This document shows, one piece after another, positions 3,289 to 12,282 of a stretch of 64,000 nucleotides of DNA (position 1 is its first letter; each line of letters opens with the position of its first letter). Source of the DNA: Piromyces finnis finn (Eukaryota > Fungi > Neocallimastigomycota). The position numbers and the translations under genes were made by a program. The stretch lies in assembly GCA_002104945.1 (NCBI GenBank), contig MCFH01000059.1:1-64000 (forward strand), written 5' to 3'. The notes beneath the pieces are model-generated. The model did no database searches and was not told the origin of the DNA. It saw only the letters and a program-made list of their open reading frames with translations.

Positions 3289-3360
3289 GGGGTGTTAGCT
3301 CAGCGGTAGAGCAATTGACTGCAGATCAATAGGTCTTCGGTTCAAATCCGGAACGCCCCT
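3289..3360 (+). tRNA. tRNA-Cys (GCA), intronless
   Basis: Full cloverleaf: acceptor GGGGTGT/ACGCCCC, D arm GCTC/GAGC, anticodon arm ATTGA-CTGCAGA-TCAAT, T arm TTCGG-TTCAAAT-CCGGA, discriminator T. Confidence 0.97.
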
Positions 3361-3789: not shown

Positions 3790-6700
3790 ATGTCTACAAT
3801 ACATAATTTTATAATTAATAATCATAAGGAACTTATAGATATAATTTCAAAATGGAATTTAACAAATAGTAAGTATCCTATTGATTTTCCTAAAGATAAA
3901 ATAAAACCATTATTAAATGAATATATTTCTGTCGAGGACTATAGATTGGTATTATATTAATAAATTCTTTATTTTAGTAGAATATCATTATATTTCAACT
4001 ACAAAATACTAAAAACATACAAAAATTACTAGAAATTTGAAATATTTTTTTATTTAGAAGCTTGGGAACCATTTAAAGATTTTAACACTAGATTAAATAA
4101 AAGGGAAATTAATTTCGAAGAAAATGCTGTAGATGTTAGGATAGAAGACTTTACAGTTATGGAAGATATATCCACTTCTGTTAATGATAATAAGTTGTTT
4201 GATTGTTACTTTACAATATTAATGCCAAATTACTTCATATATGGTTATCAGGGTATGAAATTTTCTAAAAAATCAATAGAAGATACTGATATAGAGAGAA
4301 GAACTTCTGGGGATATTAAAAAACATGATTTTATATTCCTTGCAAAAATGGATAAATCATTAAAAAAAATACATTATAAAACTATAGTAATGTCTAATAT
4401 TCAAAAAGAGTTCGATAAAAACCTAGTTACCATTTCTAAAAGAACAAATTTATGTAAATATTCACCAGTAGTTTGTACTAAACGTATGACTAAAAAAGAA
4501 ATAACTGAATTTAAAAACATGTATAGAAAAAAAAGAGACAATGATAGTTGTTGGATATGTTATCATGTAATGACATTTGGAACAATAAAAAAAGAATTTA
4601 AAACAATGGATTTATTGGTTACAATGCCAAATTTAAAAATTCGAAAGGAAATAACAACAGGAAAATGTAGAAATGAAAATACACTTTCCAAAGATAAATC
4701 TAAAGATATTCTAAGTAAAATTATGTGTGATTACAATTTAGATGATCAAAAGACTTCGCTAATATTAAAAATATATAAGAATAATATTCTTTTTCGTGAT
4801 GAAAGAAATATTCTTGTTAATTTATTAATGCCTGACGGAAGTCAAAATATTGATAATACTGTTATTCGTGTTATTAATAATATCCAAAAGGGTATTTTTC
4901 CTTTTCCGTTGCAAGATAAAAAAATTTTATATAAAAATATTATTTCTTCAGAAAATCAAGAAATAGATAATGAACTTGAGAACTTATTATATAATTCTGA
5001 TGAAAAGATAAAATTTAACAAAATAGTTAGTGAAGTAATCCAACAATATGGTTTAAATACAACCCAAGCTACTATTCTTGCTGCAGTAAATAATGAAGAA
5101 CATCTTTCTTTAATTCAAGGACCTCCTGGTACTGGCAAAACTAAAATGATTTTAGCATTTACTTATCAAGAACTTCGGTTAGCTAAAATTAAAAGAAAAA
5201 AATCAAAAATTTTGATTTGTGCTCCAAGTAATGCTGCATGTAATGAAATTACTCGCAGATTGAAAAAAGGTATATTTATATTAAATAAATTAACTAGTTT
5301 ATTCTATAATTTTATTAATATAATTATATTATTATATTTTTGTAAATACAATAATGTAATATAATTTTTATTTTAAATTATTTTATTTATTTTTTGTAAA
5401 ATTAGAAAATATTAATACAAATATTATGACGGTTCGATTTATAGTTGATGATAATGCTGATAATACCATTAGTCATGTTTCAGTAGATAAAGTTGCATTG
5501 AGAAAGCTATACAATATAATACGTAATGAGGTAATTGATTTTGCAAAATCAATTTCCATGTCAGATACAATAATTGAAGAATTAGATTTCCATATTAATA
5601 GCATTCAAAATAAAATTAAAGAACTATTAAGTAATAGAAAAGGCTTGAATATTGTAATTTCATCAAAAGCAAAAAATAAGAAAAAAATCATTAATAAATT
5701 ATATCAAAGAGTTTGTCTTCTTGAAAATGAATTAGACCAGCTTATTCAGATGTTTATTGATTATTTATTATTGATTGATGATAATGCTTTTGAGGATTAC
5801 AAAGACCATATTATAGCAACTGCTAAAGAATATAGAATGAGTATTTTTGAAGAGGCAGATGTTATAATTACAACTTTAAGTAGTAGTAATAGTGAATATT
5901 TTAAAAATATTAAGAACAAATTTACTCTTTTAGTAATTGATGAAGCTAGTCAAGCTTCCGAATTAACAACTTTAATTCCATTCTGTCATAATATACCTAA
6001 AGCTATCTTAATTGGTGATCCCAATCAACTTCCACCAACTATTTTAAATTCCGAGGCTGCAGATAACTTTTATGGAAAAAGCTTATTTCAACGACTACAA
6101 GAAAACTCTCCTAATTCTGTTCATCTTTTAAATATTCAATACCGTATGCATCCAAATATTAGTAAACTTTCTTCCCGATGTTTCTATTCTAATGAAATTA
6201 TTAATGGTGAAAATGTTAAATCTTCTAATTGGAATAAGCCATGGTGTAACAATTCAAATTTTGGGCCATTAATGTTTTATGATATAAAGGGTGTCACTAA
6301 TAAAAGTAATAACTCTTTAAATAATGTAACAGAATCTAATCAAATTTTAAATTTCATTACTCAACTACTTCTAATGACTCCAAAACTTATTTATAGTTAC
6401 AAAATTTCAATTATTTCTCCATATCGTGCTCAAGTTTTACTTATTAGAAATAGATTAAGACAATATTACAAAGAAATGCTTGATCAATTAAAACTTGATC
6501 ATACTAATGAATTTGACTTTTTAGGAGAAAAAGTAGTTATATCAGATGAAAATAAAGAATTATTAAAGAAAATAAATATCTTGGATTTTATTAATGTAAA
6601 TACTATAGATAGTTTTCAAGGTCAAGAAAGTGACATTGTCCTTTTATCTTGTGTTCGTTCAGGTACTAAAAGTGTAGGTTTCTTGTCAGATAAAAGAAGA

Positions 6701-7009
6701 CTAAACGTTGCTATTACTCGTGCTCGTTATTCTTTAATTATTTTTGGAGATTCAGAAACTTTATGTAAAGATAAATATTGGAATAATATTATAACCGAAA
6801 TGAAACATGATAAATGTTTCAAGGCAGTAAATATAGCTTTTTTTTAATTAATTATATATTTATTTTATTATTATATTTTTAAGAATAGTAAAAATTTATA
6901 ATTAACAATTTTATTATATTATTTTTAATATTTATAGAATGCTAAGGACTATTTTAAATACTCAAAACATTTCCCTAAAAATTTATTCCCAAAAAGTTTC
7001 TTTAAATAA
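3790..7009 (+). CDS. Sen1/UPF1-like SF1 helicase, paralog A (~962 aa; exons 3790-3948, 4033-5269, 5406-6826, 6938-7009)
   Basis: Motifs QGPPGTGKT, ICAPSNAAC, VIDEASQ, LIGDPNQLPP, LNIQYRMHP, ISPYRAQ, TIDSFQGQE, RRLNVAITRAR. The hand-spliced GT-AG model totals 2889 nt and stays in frame. Confidence 0.9.
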
Positions 7010-7330
7010 TTTATATTCACTTACCTCTATTTTGATATTAATAATAATTTCAACGAAAAATAATTAAAAAATTTTAAACGTGAATTTTTTTTTATCAAAT
7101 TCAATAATATAATTTAATATTAATTTTATTATTTTTGGAGAGTGAAAAAAAAGCTAATAAATAAATAAATAAATAAATAAATAAATATATGAATATATAA
7201 ATAATGAAATAATGTATATTGAATATTAAATAAGCAAATAAACAAAATAAGCAAAAAAAACAACGACAACAAAAAAATTGTCATTAATAAGCCTATATTA
7301 TATGTGAGACAAAAATCATTGTTTTTTTAT

Positions 7331-7412
7331 ACCCTGCTGAGCTTGACTCTAATTGTGAAAGAACTTAGAGGCATAAGTGGGAACTTCGGCGATCTTGAAA
7401 TACCACTATCTT
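7331..7412 (+). pseudogene. Isolated degenerate 28S (LSU) rRNA fragment
   Basis: ACCCTGCTGAGCTTGACTCTA..ATTGTGAA..TAGAG..CATAAGTGGGAACTTCGGCG..TGAAATACCACTA matches the recalled conserved eukaryotic LSU stretch ACCCTGTTGAGCTTGACTCTAGTTTGACATTGTGAA...AAGTGGGAGCTTCGGCG...GTGAAATACCACTA, with two short internal deletions. Confidence 0.85.
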
Positions 7413-7797
7413 ACTATTTTTTTTTTTTTATAAAATCATTGCTTTTTTTTATTTCCTGCTTACATTTAATTTAAATTATGTTATCATTTTATACTATAAA
7501 CTTTTAATTTTTAAAAGATCAATTATTTTCATTAATATTAAATTATATTAAACTTTTTATTATATTATATTTTTATTTCTTGGAATTTTTTATGCTGTTT
7601 ATTAATAACAATATTAAAATATGAATAAATATTTACATAGATATAAATTATTTTCTTTAAATTAATAAATATAAAAATTAATAAAATAATGCATACATTA
7701 ATATTATGAGAAGCTAATATATAAATTAATAACAGTATGATAGTATACAAGATTAAAAATAAAAAATTAAATTTACGATTTTTTGATAAATACAGAA

Positions 7798-8729
7798 TTA
7801 AATATTTAATTCAAATAAGCAGTTAGTAATAAATGCCGAATTTGGTATATTTTCAATTTTTAATTTCTTAACTTCTTTATATGATGGAATTTTAAATTGA
7901 GATATTGCTATATCTTTTTTAGTTTTTAAGCTATCAAAAAAATCAATCAGTTTTTTATTTTCATTGGCTAGACAATTTAAACTACTAGTAGAAGTAATAA
8001 TTTGTAAAAACTCTTCACAAATCATATAATTAGATATATTATTATTAATACACCATTGTATTAATTTTTTTAAGTTTTGTTGAATATATTTTTTATAATT
8101 TTCTTTTAAAGTATTATTTTTCTTTAGTTTGTAATATTTGAGCATTGAATAACTAATTAATTCAATGCAATGATTTAAAAGTTGCTTACTAAACAAGTCT
8201 TCAATATAAAAGTAATTTAATTTATTAAAAGTTCTTTTCATAAAGTAAACAGTATCGTGATTTAATTTATTGTTATTAGTATTAACCACATTATTAATAC
8301 GATTATTTGATAATTTTCACATGTTATTATATAATTCAATAATAATGTCATTTAATTTTTTTAATACATTTAAAATTATATCAACATTCTGTTTTCCCTT
8401 ATATTCCATTTCTTTATTGTAAATTGTTTCAACTACACATTTAATTTCGAAAGTATTAGATAACCAAAAATACTCGTCTTTTTTATTTTTGGAACCAACC
8501 TCCCTAATAGCATCAATAATTTTAGAGGCAAATTGTTCCAATCGATCAAATAAATTAAATTCCACAATTTCTTGAATACACGAACCAATAATTTGTGATG
8601 GGAATAATAAGTCATTTTTTTCTATTTTTTCAATTTTACTACTGTAAGTAGGAACATTATAATTTAAAATAAATTCCTCAGAAACTTCAATTTCAAGAGA
8701 TTCACTTAATAAAATTTCCCTTTTTACAT
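7798..8729 (-). CDS. Divergent myosin-V cargo-binding/Dilute (DIL) domain exon with one in-frame TGA at 8317-8319; probable terminal exon of the upstream helicase
   Basis: ORFs 8317-8565 and 7798-8289 share a frame that is open up to 8730, interrupted by a single TGA. FPSQIIGSCIQE..FASKIIDAIREV..FWLSNTFE and FYIEDLF..IQQNLKKLIQWC resemble recalled Myo2/MyoVa tail motifs (YPARIL..FLAQVLTTIQKV..FWLAN / FWLSNT; FHIE..LNYNVTRLEEWC). Confidence 0.62.
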
Positions 8730-8730
<1 letters not shown>

Positions 8731-8766
<36 letters not shown>

Positions 8767-9317
8767 ATAGTATTAAAAAATAATAAAGGTAATAAAAATT
8801 AATATATATGTAACTATATATAATATTATATCTTATTTATAATAATATTTACCATTTACTTTTTCATATTCAATAAATTCATTAGAAATTTCGGATTCGC
8901 TTAATTCACTTATTGAATTTTCTTTTTAACGTTTTTTTTTTTTTTTTTTAAATTTTTTATAGTATTAAAAAATAATAAAGGTAATAAAAATTAATATATA
9001 TGTAAATATATAAAATATTATATCTTATTTATAATAATATTTACCATTTATTTTTTCATATTCAATAAATTCATTAGAAATTTCGGATTCGCTTAATTCA
9101 CTTATTGAATTTTCTTTTTAACGTTTTTTTTTTTTTTTTTTTTAAATTTTTATAGTATTAAAAAATAATAAAGGTAATAAAAATTAATATATATATGTAA
9201 ATATATAAAATATTATATTTTATTTATAATAATATTTACCATTTACTTTTTCATATTCAATAAATTCCTTACAAATTTCAGTTTCAATTAATTCACTTGT
9301 TGAATTTTCCTTTTTTT
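8731..9317 (-). repeat. Three tandem ~190-200 bp exon+intron units
   Basis: Near-identical units at about 8731-8931, 8932-9123 and 9124-9317, each with a poly-T run and TTTTTATAGTATTAAAAAATAATAAAGGT. On the minus strand each encodes ENSxSELxExEIxxEFIEYEKxNG, followed by GTAAAT. Confidence 0.9.
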
Positions 9318-9467
9318 CTTTATTTTTTTTTTATATAAAATTTTTGAGCATTATAAAATAAATTTATGAAATATAATAAAAAACAATAAAAAAAATGTAA
9401 AATGTAAGTGTATATAAAAAATATTGTAATATTACTATTTAATATTTTTATTTACAATAATATTTAC

Positions 9468-12282
9468 TATTAAGTTTTTCCCATTCAATTCGTTTTTTTA
9501 ATGCTTTAAAAAATTTTTTTGGTAGTAAATTTGAAGGGAAACTGTAATGATTATCAAAATAATTGGTAAGATTCTATTATATTGAATATATATTAATTAA
9601 AAAAGATAAATTAAATTAATAGGTAAAAAATATCTATCTATTAAAGGATATTTTTAATAATAAAAAAAATATATAAAGAAAGAATAAATATAAATATACC
9701 AATTTGAGGCATTTCATAGATTCAATTATAGTAATTATTTTTCTCCATTCGTCATTTTTCAATAAAGTAAAAGGATCGCCAAAAATAATTAATGAATAAC
9801 GGGAACGACTAATAGAAACGTTCAATCTTCCTTTATTTTTTAAAAACCCAATTTTCATGTCTGTTCGAACAGTAGAAACAATAACAATATCATTTTCTTG
9901 ACCCTGAAAACCATCAATTGTATTCACACTAATATTATTAAAAAGATCTATATTTTTTAGTTTTTCCTCATATCTTTTATCGGATCCAATCTCAACAGTA
10001 TCATCATAAAATTTCATGGTCTTATCATTACTTGAATGCATATCATTTAATAAAATGTCCAAAGTTGATAAATATAGTTCTTTTAATTTTTTTTTAATAA
10101 GAAAAACTTGAGCACTATAAGGTGAAATAACCGAAATTTTTTTATTGAAGCATACGTCAGGATTAGATCTAAGAATTTCAAAAATACAATTAACGACTTG
10201 ATTAGCCTCTTCTTCATTGGAAAATGAAGACCCACAATTGTTTGAAACCTCGCCTCTTACATAATAAAACGCAACAGGACCAAATTTTGAATTATTATTT
10301 TTAGTCCATTCTTTGATCCATTGATTTGACTTGACATTCTCCATCAATGATTTTTCCATCATAGAAACATTGAGAGGAAAGTTTACTAATATTCGGATGC
10401 ATACGATATTGAACATTTAATAAAAATATTTCTTCTGATAAAGACTCTTCTTGGATTCTTTCAAATAAACTTTTACCATAACCACATTTTTCAATTTTAT
10501 GACTTTTTATAATTGGAGGTAGTTGTTTTGGATCACCAATTAAAATAGCTTGATTAATATTATAACAAAAAAGGATTAAGCAAGTTAATTCGGTACATTG
10601 GCAAGCTTCATCAATAATTAAAAAATTAAATAATAATTCTCTTATGTATTTGTTTCCACTAAAATATAAAGTACAAATAACTACATTGGCCTTATTTAAT
10701 TCTTCTTCTAATTTTATTTCGGTTAAATTATTATCTGCTTTACATCTGAAGGGTCTAATATATTCTTTGTTTTCTTTCTCTATATATATTTAATATTATT
10801 ATAATTAGTAAAAAAAAATTAATTAGTAGTAGTAATTATCGTGAATTTGATTCATATTATTTATACTAAATAAACCATAAAGATAATTAGTATTAAATAT
10901 TTATTTTTTTAATGTCATTTTTGTATTTAGATGATATTTTAATTTAATATCTAATAAATTAGTTTTTTTTTACCTTTCTCTAGTCTTTTAGCAATTTCAT
11001 CACATGCATAATTACTTGGAGTACAAACTAAAATTTTAAATGGATTATTGGTTAAGAATGATTCTGTTAATTCTCTTATAATTGTAGCTATAATGGTAGT
11101 AGTTTTTCCAGTACCAGGGGGTCCTTGTACTAATGATAATTTTCTATTTTTAACTTTTTTTAAAACATTAGCTTGAGATGGATTTAAATGGTATTCATCA
11201 ATAATATTATTTGTAATATCGTCACTTAACATTGGATCTTGTCCTTGGATTTTAAAGTCATTATTAATACTTTTAATATTTCCTGAGGTAATAATATTAC
11301 ATATAGGAAGTGAAGGTTTTTCAGTTAATGTAAGTAATGTTTTATATTCCTTTCTAATTGAACCAAATGACATAATATGATAACATATCCATTGTCCTCT
11401 TATCATATGCTGTTCATTTAAAAATTTTTGATAATTATCTATTGTCATTCTAGCTTTACATAAGACTAATAATTTATCCTTAGGATTAAGTTTCTCAGTT
11501 AGATGCATTAATTTTATTTCCTCATCCAATTCATCATCATCATCATCATCTTTTTTTGAAGAAGTTGAAGAATTATTAGTGAGAAAGAACTCAATATTTT
11601 TTTCGTTTTTATGCATACTTGTAACTATGGTATCATTGAAGAATAAAAGTGTTTCAAAATACCTTTCTTCGAAATTGTTACTCACTTTCGCTAAATAAAG
11701 TAAATCCAAATTTTTTATATATCCGGAAGATCTTTTTTCCTTATTCTTAATTTTTTTTGGATTATAATCTATACCGTTATATCCTAATAAAAAAATATAT
11801 CGGCATTTTTAAGACTACGATATAGGAATTATGAGTTTCTGATAAAGAACATTTTTTAGTTTCAATAGTTTTTAAAACATCTACATTAACTGCATTTTTT
11901 TTAAAGTTAAAATATCCTTTATATAATTTTTCATTAAAATCTCTAAGCGGTTCCTTGCATTCTACATGAAATAATGGTTCAATAAACTATTATTATTTAA
12001 TATATAATTGGTCTTAATCATCAAGATAAAATGTACAATAATAAATAAATACTATTTATAGGTTTTAAAAAAAATTACACTAACATTTTTATAATCATTT
12101 ATTGAGGAATATCTATTTTTTAACTTATTAAAATTTTTATTCCTTATGTCATTATATGGATCATCGCATAATTCCCAATTATATGGACTATTTAAACATG
12201 AAAAATAATTCTCTTCCTTCTCTTCCTCATTTGTCTTTATACTATTAATTTTCTCTGAATATAGATTATATGAACTAAGCAT
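9468..12282 (-). pseudogene. Sen1/UPF1-like SF1 helicase, paralog B (exons 12282-12085, 11986-10974, 10779-9700, 9573-9468); two frameshifts, so pseudogene or assembly error
   Basis: Motifs VQGPPGTGKT, VCTPSNYACDE, IIDEACQ, LIGDPKQLPP, LNVQYRMHP, TIDGFQGQE, RLNVSISRSR. It has the same three intron positions and phases as paralog A. There is an extra T in a T7 run near 11790 and a shift at GE/NVKS near 10340. Confidence 0.85.

Follow-up and report, generated by a model that had tools for sequence, protein, structure and literature searches.

A predicted Sen1-like helicase with a myosin-V-type globular tail domain in anaerobic gut fungi, and its apparently degenerate copy in Piromyces finnis

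The first 64 kb of contig MCFH01000059.1 of Piromyces finnis (assembly GCA_002104945.1), referred to here as the window, contain two Sen1-like helicase paralogs arranged tail to tail, paralog A on the plus strand and paralog B on the minus strand from 12282 downward. The last helicase exon of paralog B can be joined in frame to a downstream exon with similarity to the globular tail domain (GTD) of class V myosins. It is proposed here, with a probability of about three in four, that this locus is the P. finnis ortholog of a helicase-GTD gene restricted to gut fungi, which would encode a protein of ~1,100 aa in the intact orthologs and is degenerate in this copy. The combination of helicase and GTD, as predicted from the genomic sequences, would be a new domain architecture of two well-known domains.

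Domain content and exon structure of paralog B

The helicase core of paralog B was recognized by AAA_11 (59.8 and 86.4 bits) and AAA_12 (51.2 and 117.8 bits), all above the gathering score (Pfam cut-off of 27). The helicase motifs are legible in the translations and include the Walker A motif GPPGTGKT, IIDEACQ, which contains the DEA of motif II, and NVSISRSR with the arginines of motif VI. The closest solved relatives are of the Sen1 type (E 1e-51 to 1e-58), with Upf1 (1e-40), IGHMBP2 and Dna2 behind. These matches support the assignment of paralog B to the Sen1-like/Upf1-like helicases of superfamily 1B (SF1B), with a predicted 5'-3' activity on RNA or DNA. The first exon is homologous to exon 1 of the intact metagenomic ortholog L003, with which it has in common the motif FSC.NSPYNWEL..DPYNDIR.

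The C-terminus of paralog A reads ...FPKNLFPKSFFK and is followed by TAA. The equivalent exon 4 of paralog B (9573-9468) reads ...FPSNLLPKKFFKALKKRIEWEKLN, is free of stops, carries the extra residues ALKKRIEWEKLN and ends with an A directly before the donor GTAAAT. Joining 9573-9468, 9317-9240, 9113-9045, 8921-8853 and 8729-7798 through GT..AG introns gives 1254 nt in one frame, in which the only internal stop is the TGA at 8317-8319. A stop-less exon with in-frame GT-AG joins into the tail had been claimed in the first-pass annotation of this DNA, and the direct check of the sequence bears it out. All of the donors and acceptors across 9573-7798 are phase 1, so that any subset of the three mini-exons between exon 4 and the terminal exon, or none of them, preserves the frame. 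The A-rich context of the acceptors, noted earlier as a caveat, is found in the orthologs as well, and also at genuine introns further upstream in this gene.

The terminal exon was compared with known domains at the level of sequence, profile and structure. Pfam DIL (PF01843) remained sub-threshold on the C-terminal piece of the window (E 0.097, 13.3 bits vs a cut-off of 24) and gave no match in any of the five GTD orthologs described below. A feature search with the ESM protein language model placed the same piece among DIL clusters (0.93; 189/256 features). Against the PDB, a three-sequence GTD profile retrieved class V myosin GTDs only, with Myo2p at E 2e-6, and a five-sequence profile matched the GTD of Myo2p at E 3.6e-10, with profile positions 3-269 aligned to GTD residues 21-306, and that of Myo4p at E 7e-5, with no other PDB family below E 0.05. 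The tail of one metagenomic ortholog (L016) was modelled with AlphaFold2, with a predicted local distance difference test score (pLDDT) of 67.9 and a predicted template modelling score (pTM) of 0.68. This model aligns to the GTDs of MyoVa, MyoVb, MyoVc, Myo2p, Myo4p and plant MyoXI with Z 14.0-16.4 over ~250-270 of its 306 residues (model residues 4-301). GTDs of class V/XI make up the first 22 structural matches, while the next tier, formed by the related MUN and exocyst folds, reaches at most Z 12.7, and the top 34 Foldseek matches are all GTDs. The Dilute-like tail suggested by the first-pass annotation is upheld by the profile and by the fold (Z 16), though Pfam DIL is sub-threshold. On these profile and model comparisons, the terminal exon encodes a compact and complete GTD, beginning at the exon boundary.

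Table 1. Features of the helicase-GTD locus in the window and of the related loci in other gut fungi (ORF, open reading frame; TRF, Tandem Repeats Finder)
Feature	Location	Strand	Description
Paralog A	window 3790..7009	+	Tail-less Sen1-like helicase, intact, annotated 962 aa; convergent with paralog B
Helicase B exon 1	window 12079..12282	-	ATG at 12282; ends ...YKNVS before GTAATT
Helicase B exon 2	window 10974..11986	-	N-terminal region and start of the SF1 core (Walker A GPPGTGKT); Pfam AAA_11 E 4.5e-16
Helicase B exon 3	window 9700..10779	-	Remainder of AAA_11 (E 3.6e-24) and AAA_12 (E 5.6e-34, 1.5e-13)
Helicase B exon 4	window 9468..9573	-	Without the stop of paralog A; extra residues (see text); phase-1 GTAAAT donor
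Mini-exon 1	window 9240..9317	-	78 nt, phase 1 / phase 1
Mini-exon 2	window 9045..9113	-	69 nt
Mini-exon 3	window 8853..8921	-	69 nt
192-bp tandem repeat	window 8740..9361		3.2 copies, 92% matches, TRF score 1040; unit = mini-exon + intron copy
Terminal exon, predicted myosin-V-type GTD	window 7798..8729	-	No ATG at exon start; TGA 8317-8319 at conserved Trp
Piromyces sp. E2 locus (L001)	KZ150941.1		GTD-like ORF downstream of B-type helicase, same strand
Metagenome locus (L002)	ENA contig k141_76551		GTD-like ORF downstream of B-type helicase, same strand
Metagenome loci (L003-L006, L008-L011)	JGI contigs		GTD-like ORF downstream of B-type helicase, same strand
Metagenome loci (L016-L018)	JGI/ENA contigs		306-aa downstream ORF; hhalign E 1e-83 to the GTD family; found via helicase search
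Anaeromyces robustus locus (L019)	MCFG01000469.1, L019:6556-7473		GTD ORF; tblastn E 7e-44; found via helicase search

The helicase-GTD layout in other gut fungi

When the C-terminal part of the window GTD was compared with 1.84 billion representatives, four matches were obtained at E 2.4e-17 or better. One is the 147-aa model of the window itself, and the others are ORFs of 252-322 aa in Piromyces sp. E2 (L001), in the ENA metagenome contig (L002) and in JGI contigs (L003-L006). Each of the four is immediately preceded, on its own strand, by a helicase with AAA_11/AAA_12. With the loci added by the helicase search (Table 1), intact GTD ORFs of 306-322 codons were found in five other taxa, at 37-49% identity; these taxa are Piromyces sp. 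E2, A. robustus and three metagenome fungi, with the members of the L003 cluster and their contigs counted as the same strain (1 mismatch in 2.4 kb). A search of related genomes for a helicase with a DIL-like tail had been recommended with the original prediction, and the layout was recovered in these five taxa. In A. robustus, the intact GTD exon of ~306 codons (L019:6556-7473) is located downstream of the annotated helicase fragment P0016 and has no public gene model.

The junction between both parts is sequenced in four of these taxa (L002, L003, L016 and L019). In all four, the stop found in paralog A is missing from the final helicase exon, which extends for 12-16 codons (SLKKKIEYEKRI, SLEKEKGKGKAKGKLN, SLKKQIEREKQI and SLKKKIKNENND) up to a phase-1 donor, GTAAAT or GTATAT, whose position corresponds to 9468 of the window. 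An intron of 180-245 nt follows, and then a phase-1 AG acceptor that opens the GTD ORF. Piromyces sp. E2 has the same phase-1 acceptor, with exon 4 and the donor hidden by an assembly gap. This gap (L001:7062-7926) is a run of N with long T runs at its flanks, placed where helicase exon 4 and the fusion intron are expected, and the region may be repetitive, as in P. finnis.

None of the GTD ORFs starts with ATG in any taxon examined. The initial 'M' of the GTD model P0004 corresponds to TTG, the model P0002 is flagged as partial, and in L003 the conservation of the GTD reaches 55 codons upstream of the first Met. Spliced in silico, the L003 locus yields five exons, with introns of 112, 161, 157 and 180 nt, and an uninterrupted ORF of 1,106 aa. 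In length and in its boundary motifs, the fusion intron is like the three introns further upstream in this gene, whose status is not disputed. The layout shown by these gene models is a predicted Sen1-like helicase core, a ~45-aa linker and a GTD. In L016 (5001-6188), the intron between exons 3 and 4 is stop-free in frame, and a prokaryotic gene caller produces a 395-aa read-through ORF across it.

The identity in exon 3 gives the relationship between the paralogs, with B-type sequences 67-75% identical to each other and paralog A 51-56% identical to every B-type sequence. Because paralog A is equidistant from all of the B-type sequences, the A/B duplication predates these taxa, and because paralog B groups with the tailed orthologs, the GTD tail is assigned to the B lineage. 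As far as the searches reached, the fusion gene was found in anaerobic gut fungi only. Judged from the predicted genes, conservation of the GTD-tailed helicase covers at least two named genera of Neocallimastigomycota. As to the fusion proposed in the first-pass annotation, the architecture stands on the comparative genomics of the five other taxa and on the conserved phase-1 splice sites, while the copy in the window does not encode an intact protein.

Condition of the P. finnis copy and rival readings

Three lesions interrupt the window copy. In the first, the T7 run of exon 2 (11789-11795) has one T too many, relative to L002, L003 and paralog A, where the window has TAT TTT TT(T) and the orthologs TAT TT[TC] TT[GA] TTA GGA. 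The second is a loss of 2 nt at ~10336-10340 in exon 3, with GGAGAAT in place of GGA CCA AAT in the orthologs and GGT GAA AAT in paralog A. The third is the TGA in the terminal exon, which replaces the TGG of L001, L002 and L003 within the conserved motif IW[KR]SL. The three lesions are specific to the window, missing from the orthologs, and fall in ~3.5 kb of coding sequence; they correspond to the two frameshifts and the TGA already noticed in the first reading of the sequence, which are present in the assembly and can now be located against the orthologs. With two frameshifts relative to both the orthologs and paralog A, the reading frame of the window copy is not intact. Translation of the TGA as a sense codon and bridging of the frameshifts by small introns were considered and rejected, since the exons of the orthologs are continuous at these places.

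Several observations weigh against the interpretation of the locus as a copy of a conserved helicase-GTD gene. Among ~15 billion sequences, no protein covering both domains was found, meaning that the two have not been joined in any recorded annotation or transcript assembly. The helicase of Neocallimastix sp. 'constans' (L020, JBODTK010000016.1), which is paralog-A-like with 56% identity, has no GTD exon within 5 kb downstream. When exon 4 is left unspliced, the frame closes after 8 codons in the window (...EKLNSKYYCK, then a stop) and after ~40 codons in L002 and L003, and such an early stop by read-through would make a tail-less isoform possible. The lesions could be assembly errors, an additional T in a T run being a typical long-read error. 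Finally, the comparison with sequencing runs considered below relies on a sample of 20 words and on runs whose type is a guess, with X1 taken as RNA of the same organism and X5 as DNA.

Two further searches for the fusion gave no addition to the known loci. A profile search of 5.8 billion clusters (176-560 aa) recovered the four known clusters only, with no Logan or transcript-derived fragment spanning the junction, and a scan of JGI metagenome contigs gave no match. In the Neocallimastix contig, several AAA_11/AAA_12 helicase genes follow one another in a tandem array of 11 kb or less. An expansion of the helicase family in the anaerobic gut fungi seems likely.

An unlikely reading, although the best placed of the alternatives, is that the organism has an intact, working copy of the window gene and that the frameshifts and TGA of this gene are long-read assembly errors. 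It would accommodate the first lesion as a +1 in a T7 homopolymer, the limited extra decay of paralog B (67-73% identity to the orthologs vs 70-75% among the orthologs) and the X1 run, which, if RNA, holds ~70% of the words of the locus, as if the locus were transcribed. However, the 2-nt deletion lies outside any long homopolymer and, like the G>A substitution behind the TGA, is less typical of long-read consensus errors; the accumulation of three lesions in this length of coding sequence is also against it. In the same window, paralog A and a 501-aa integrase ORF are uninterrupted, which indicates that the assembly is not riddled with errors. Since the divergence of paralog B from the orthologs is hardly above theirs from each other, a recent event is preferred, and the window copy is probably a recently inactivated pseudogene, possibly still transcribed.

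A second alternative treats the locus as two separate genes, with the helicase ending by read-through (8 to ~40 codons) and the GTD ORF being independent, driven by a promoter of its own and preceded by a small first exon that has escaped recognition. Public annotations do present the two parts as separate partial models, and no recorded protein spans both domains. Nevertheless, the two parts are separated by just 180-245 nt in each of the four taxa, no ATG is present in the conserved portion of the GTD ORF of any taxon, and the donor is conserved in position and phase. The exon-4 extension is open in DNA of ~80% A+T, and its length shifts by multiples of three only. As for the GTD models in the annotations, they are flagged partial, or start at non-ATG or internal codons.

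The word shares bear on the same alternative. For 7798-12282, X1 holds 0.70 of the sampled words, against an expectation of 0.72-0.74 with all exons including the GTD exon and of ~0.51-0.55 with the helicase exons only. For 9318-9573, the share is 0.30 in X1 and 1.00 in X5, with 0.34 expected if exon 4 alone is represented, ~0.5 or more if a 3' untranslated region (UTR) continues beyond it, and ~0.6-1.0 for typical 3' UTR lengths. With 20 words and guessed run types, the X1 shares weakly favour the use of the 9468 donor. Taken with the conserved junction, the reading as two genes is improbable, and a single helicase-GTD gene is preferred.

The three mini-exons of the window form part of a tandem repeat (Table 1). 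Their heads resemble the start of the GTD exon (34/48 nt, 71%) and their tails resemble the end of exon 4 (17/22 nt, 77%), with FIEYEKVN in the mini-exons vs RIEWEKLN, and KIEYEKRI in L002. After each mini-exon stands a copy of the fusion intron. This pattern of head, tail and intron is what a tandem duplication would leave if its segment started within exon 4, spanned the intron and ended within the GTD exon. The copies are 88-99% identical in the mini-exons and 93-98% in the introns, and as the former are no better conserved than the latter, nothing suggests selection on the mini-exons. The intact orthologs L002, L003, L016 and L019 have one fusion intron and zero mini-exons. By this comparison, the mini-exons are specific to the P. 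finnis genome and arose by a local tandem duplication spanning the fusion intron, in which the segment composed of the exon-4 tail, the fusion intron and the head of the GTD exon gave three in-frame mini-exons. Their inclusion in the gene model by the first-pass annotation is correct as to frame and GT-AG borders, while as products of a local duplication they stand outside the conserved gene. This duplication across an intron is a clean example of the birth of in-frame mini-exons.

The reading of 7798-9573 as a chance artefact of AT-rich sequence, with an open frame and GT/AG sites produced by chance and a 'DIL' similarity due to composition, could point to the sub-threshold Pfam score (E 0.097) and to the mini-exon copies being no better conserved than the intron copies, but it is practically eliminated by the intact orthologous ORFs of 306-322 codons in five other taxa (37-49% identity), by the Myo2p profile match and by the fold covering nearly the whole domain; it is already refuted for the GTD exon and could apply only to the inclusion of the mini-exons in the mRNA.

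The P. finnis strain Pirfi3 (MCFH) is an anaerobic gut fungus from horse, according to a published strain table (PMC6712302). The window has a G+C content of ~15-25%. The stop codons of paralog A and of the GTD exon of paralog B are separated by ~790 bp (window 7009-7798), and a tRNA-Cys (GCA) is encoded on the plus strand at 3289-3360, ~430 bp upstream of paralog A. The uninterrupted 501-aa ORF occupies 56-1561 on the plus strand, at the start of the contig, in the only G+C-rich kilobase (0.38). Inspected by eye, the ORF shows integrase-core motifs and, towards its C-terminus, a segment resembling a chromodomain (...YLIKWKGYPLSEASWEP...), and by these motifs it looks like the end of a Ty3/Gypsy chromovirus pol.

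Possible role and relation to known systems

In the proposed gene of the B lineage, an N-terminal region and the AAA_11/AAA_12 core would be followed by a last intron joining, in phase 1, to the terminal GTD exon, and the sequence comparison suggests that helicase and GTD exons are spliced into one mRNA. Myosin-V GTDs, such as those of Myo2p, Myo4p and MyoVa, bind Rab GTPases and organelle- or ribonucleoprotein (RNP)-specific adaptors. In the fusion protein, the GTD may serve as a docking module for the same kinds of partners, Rab GTPases and organelle- or RNP-specific adaptors, and would place the helicase on a cargo/adaptor complex without a motor. The helicase might thus be recruited to myosin-V receptors, or compete with myosin V for them. 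The tethering of RNA remodelling to cargo adaptors, put forward as an inference in the first-pass annotation, stays at that level here. A functional, motor-less helicase docked on Rab- or adaptor-marked vesicles, organelles or transported RNPs is a tentative proposal, held at slightly less than even odds; such a protein could act beside myosin V or compete for the same receptors.

If the fusion protein is made, it would offer a directly testable case of a motor-less nucleic-acid helicase making use of the cargo-receptor system of myosin V, with a bearing on the positioning of RNPs and mRNA in fungi. If it is also docked on cargo, RNA/R-loop remodelling would be tied directly to the cargo-adaptor code, a connection not known before. 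The annotation is corrected in at least three public genomes, given that the models of P. finnis and Piromyces sp. E2 are fragments and that the GTD exon of A. robustus is unannotated. In a full-text literature search, no paper was found that combines the DIL domain with helicases in gut fungi, nor any prior description of the architecture, in agreement with its having been called unrecognised at the outset; it escaped recognition because Pfam cannot see the tail.

Among known systems, the helicase part is most similar to the Sen1/senataxin-type SF1B helicases, such as Saccharomyces cerevisiae Sen1 (PDB 5mzn, 8ram), with which it shares the AAA_11 + AAA_12 core and the Walker A, DEA, QYRMHP and SRSR/TRAR motifs. 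Unlike Sen1, the gut-fungal protein is far shorter and is predicted to lack the long N-terminal domain, having instead an unrelated N-terminal region of ~250 aa and a C-terminal myosin-V-type GTD. The tail, in turn, is related to the GTDs of class V myosins (Myo2p, 2f6h/6ixo; Myo4p, 3mmi; MyoVa, 3wb8) by profile homology and by a fold that matches the whole GTD (Z 15.5-16.4). It differs from them in its low identity (~15-17%) and its size (~306 aa vs ~380-420 aa), and in its partner, a helicase in place of the motor, lever arm and coiled coil of the myosins.

A connection between a myosin-V GTD and RNA biology is known from the Myo4p-She3p-She2p system of mRNA transport in budding yeast, where the GTD recruits an RNP through an adaptor. 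The likeness to the gut-fungal protein is a functional analogy only, because in yeast the GTD is on the motor and the RNA-binding proteins are separate subunits, whereas here helicase and GTD are predicted to be fused, with no motor. GTD/DIL modules outside myosins also occur in Afadin/AF-6 and other non-myosin DIL-domain proteins, which are metazoan and combine the domain with RA, FHA and PDZ domains and with no helicase. The gut-fungal gene resembles these proteins in carrying the module outside a myosin and differs from them in the partner of the GTD, which is predicted to be a helicase and not an RA, FHA or PDZ domain.

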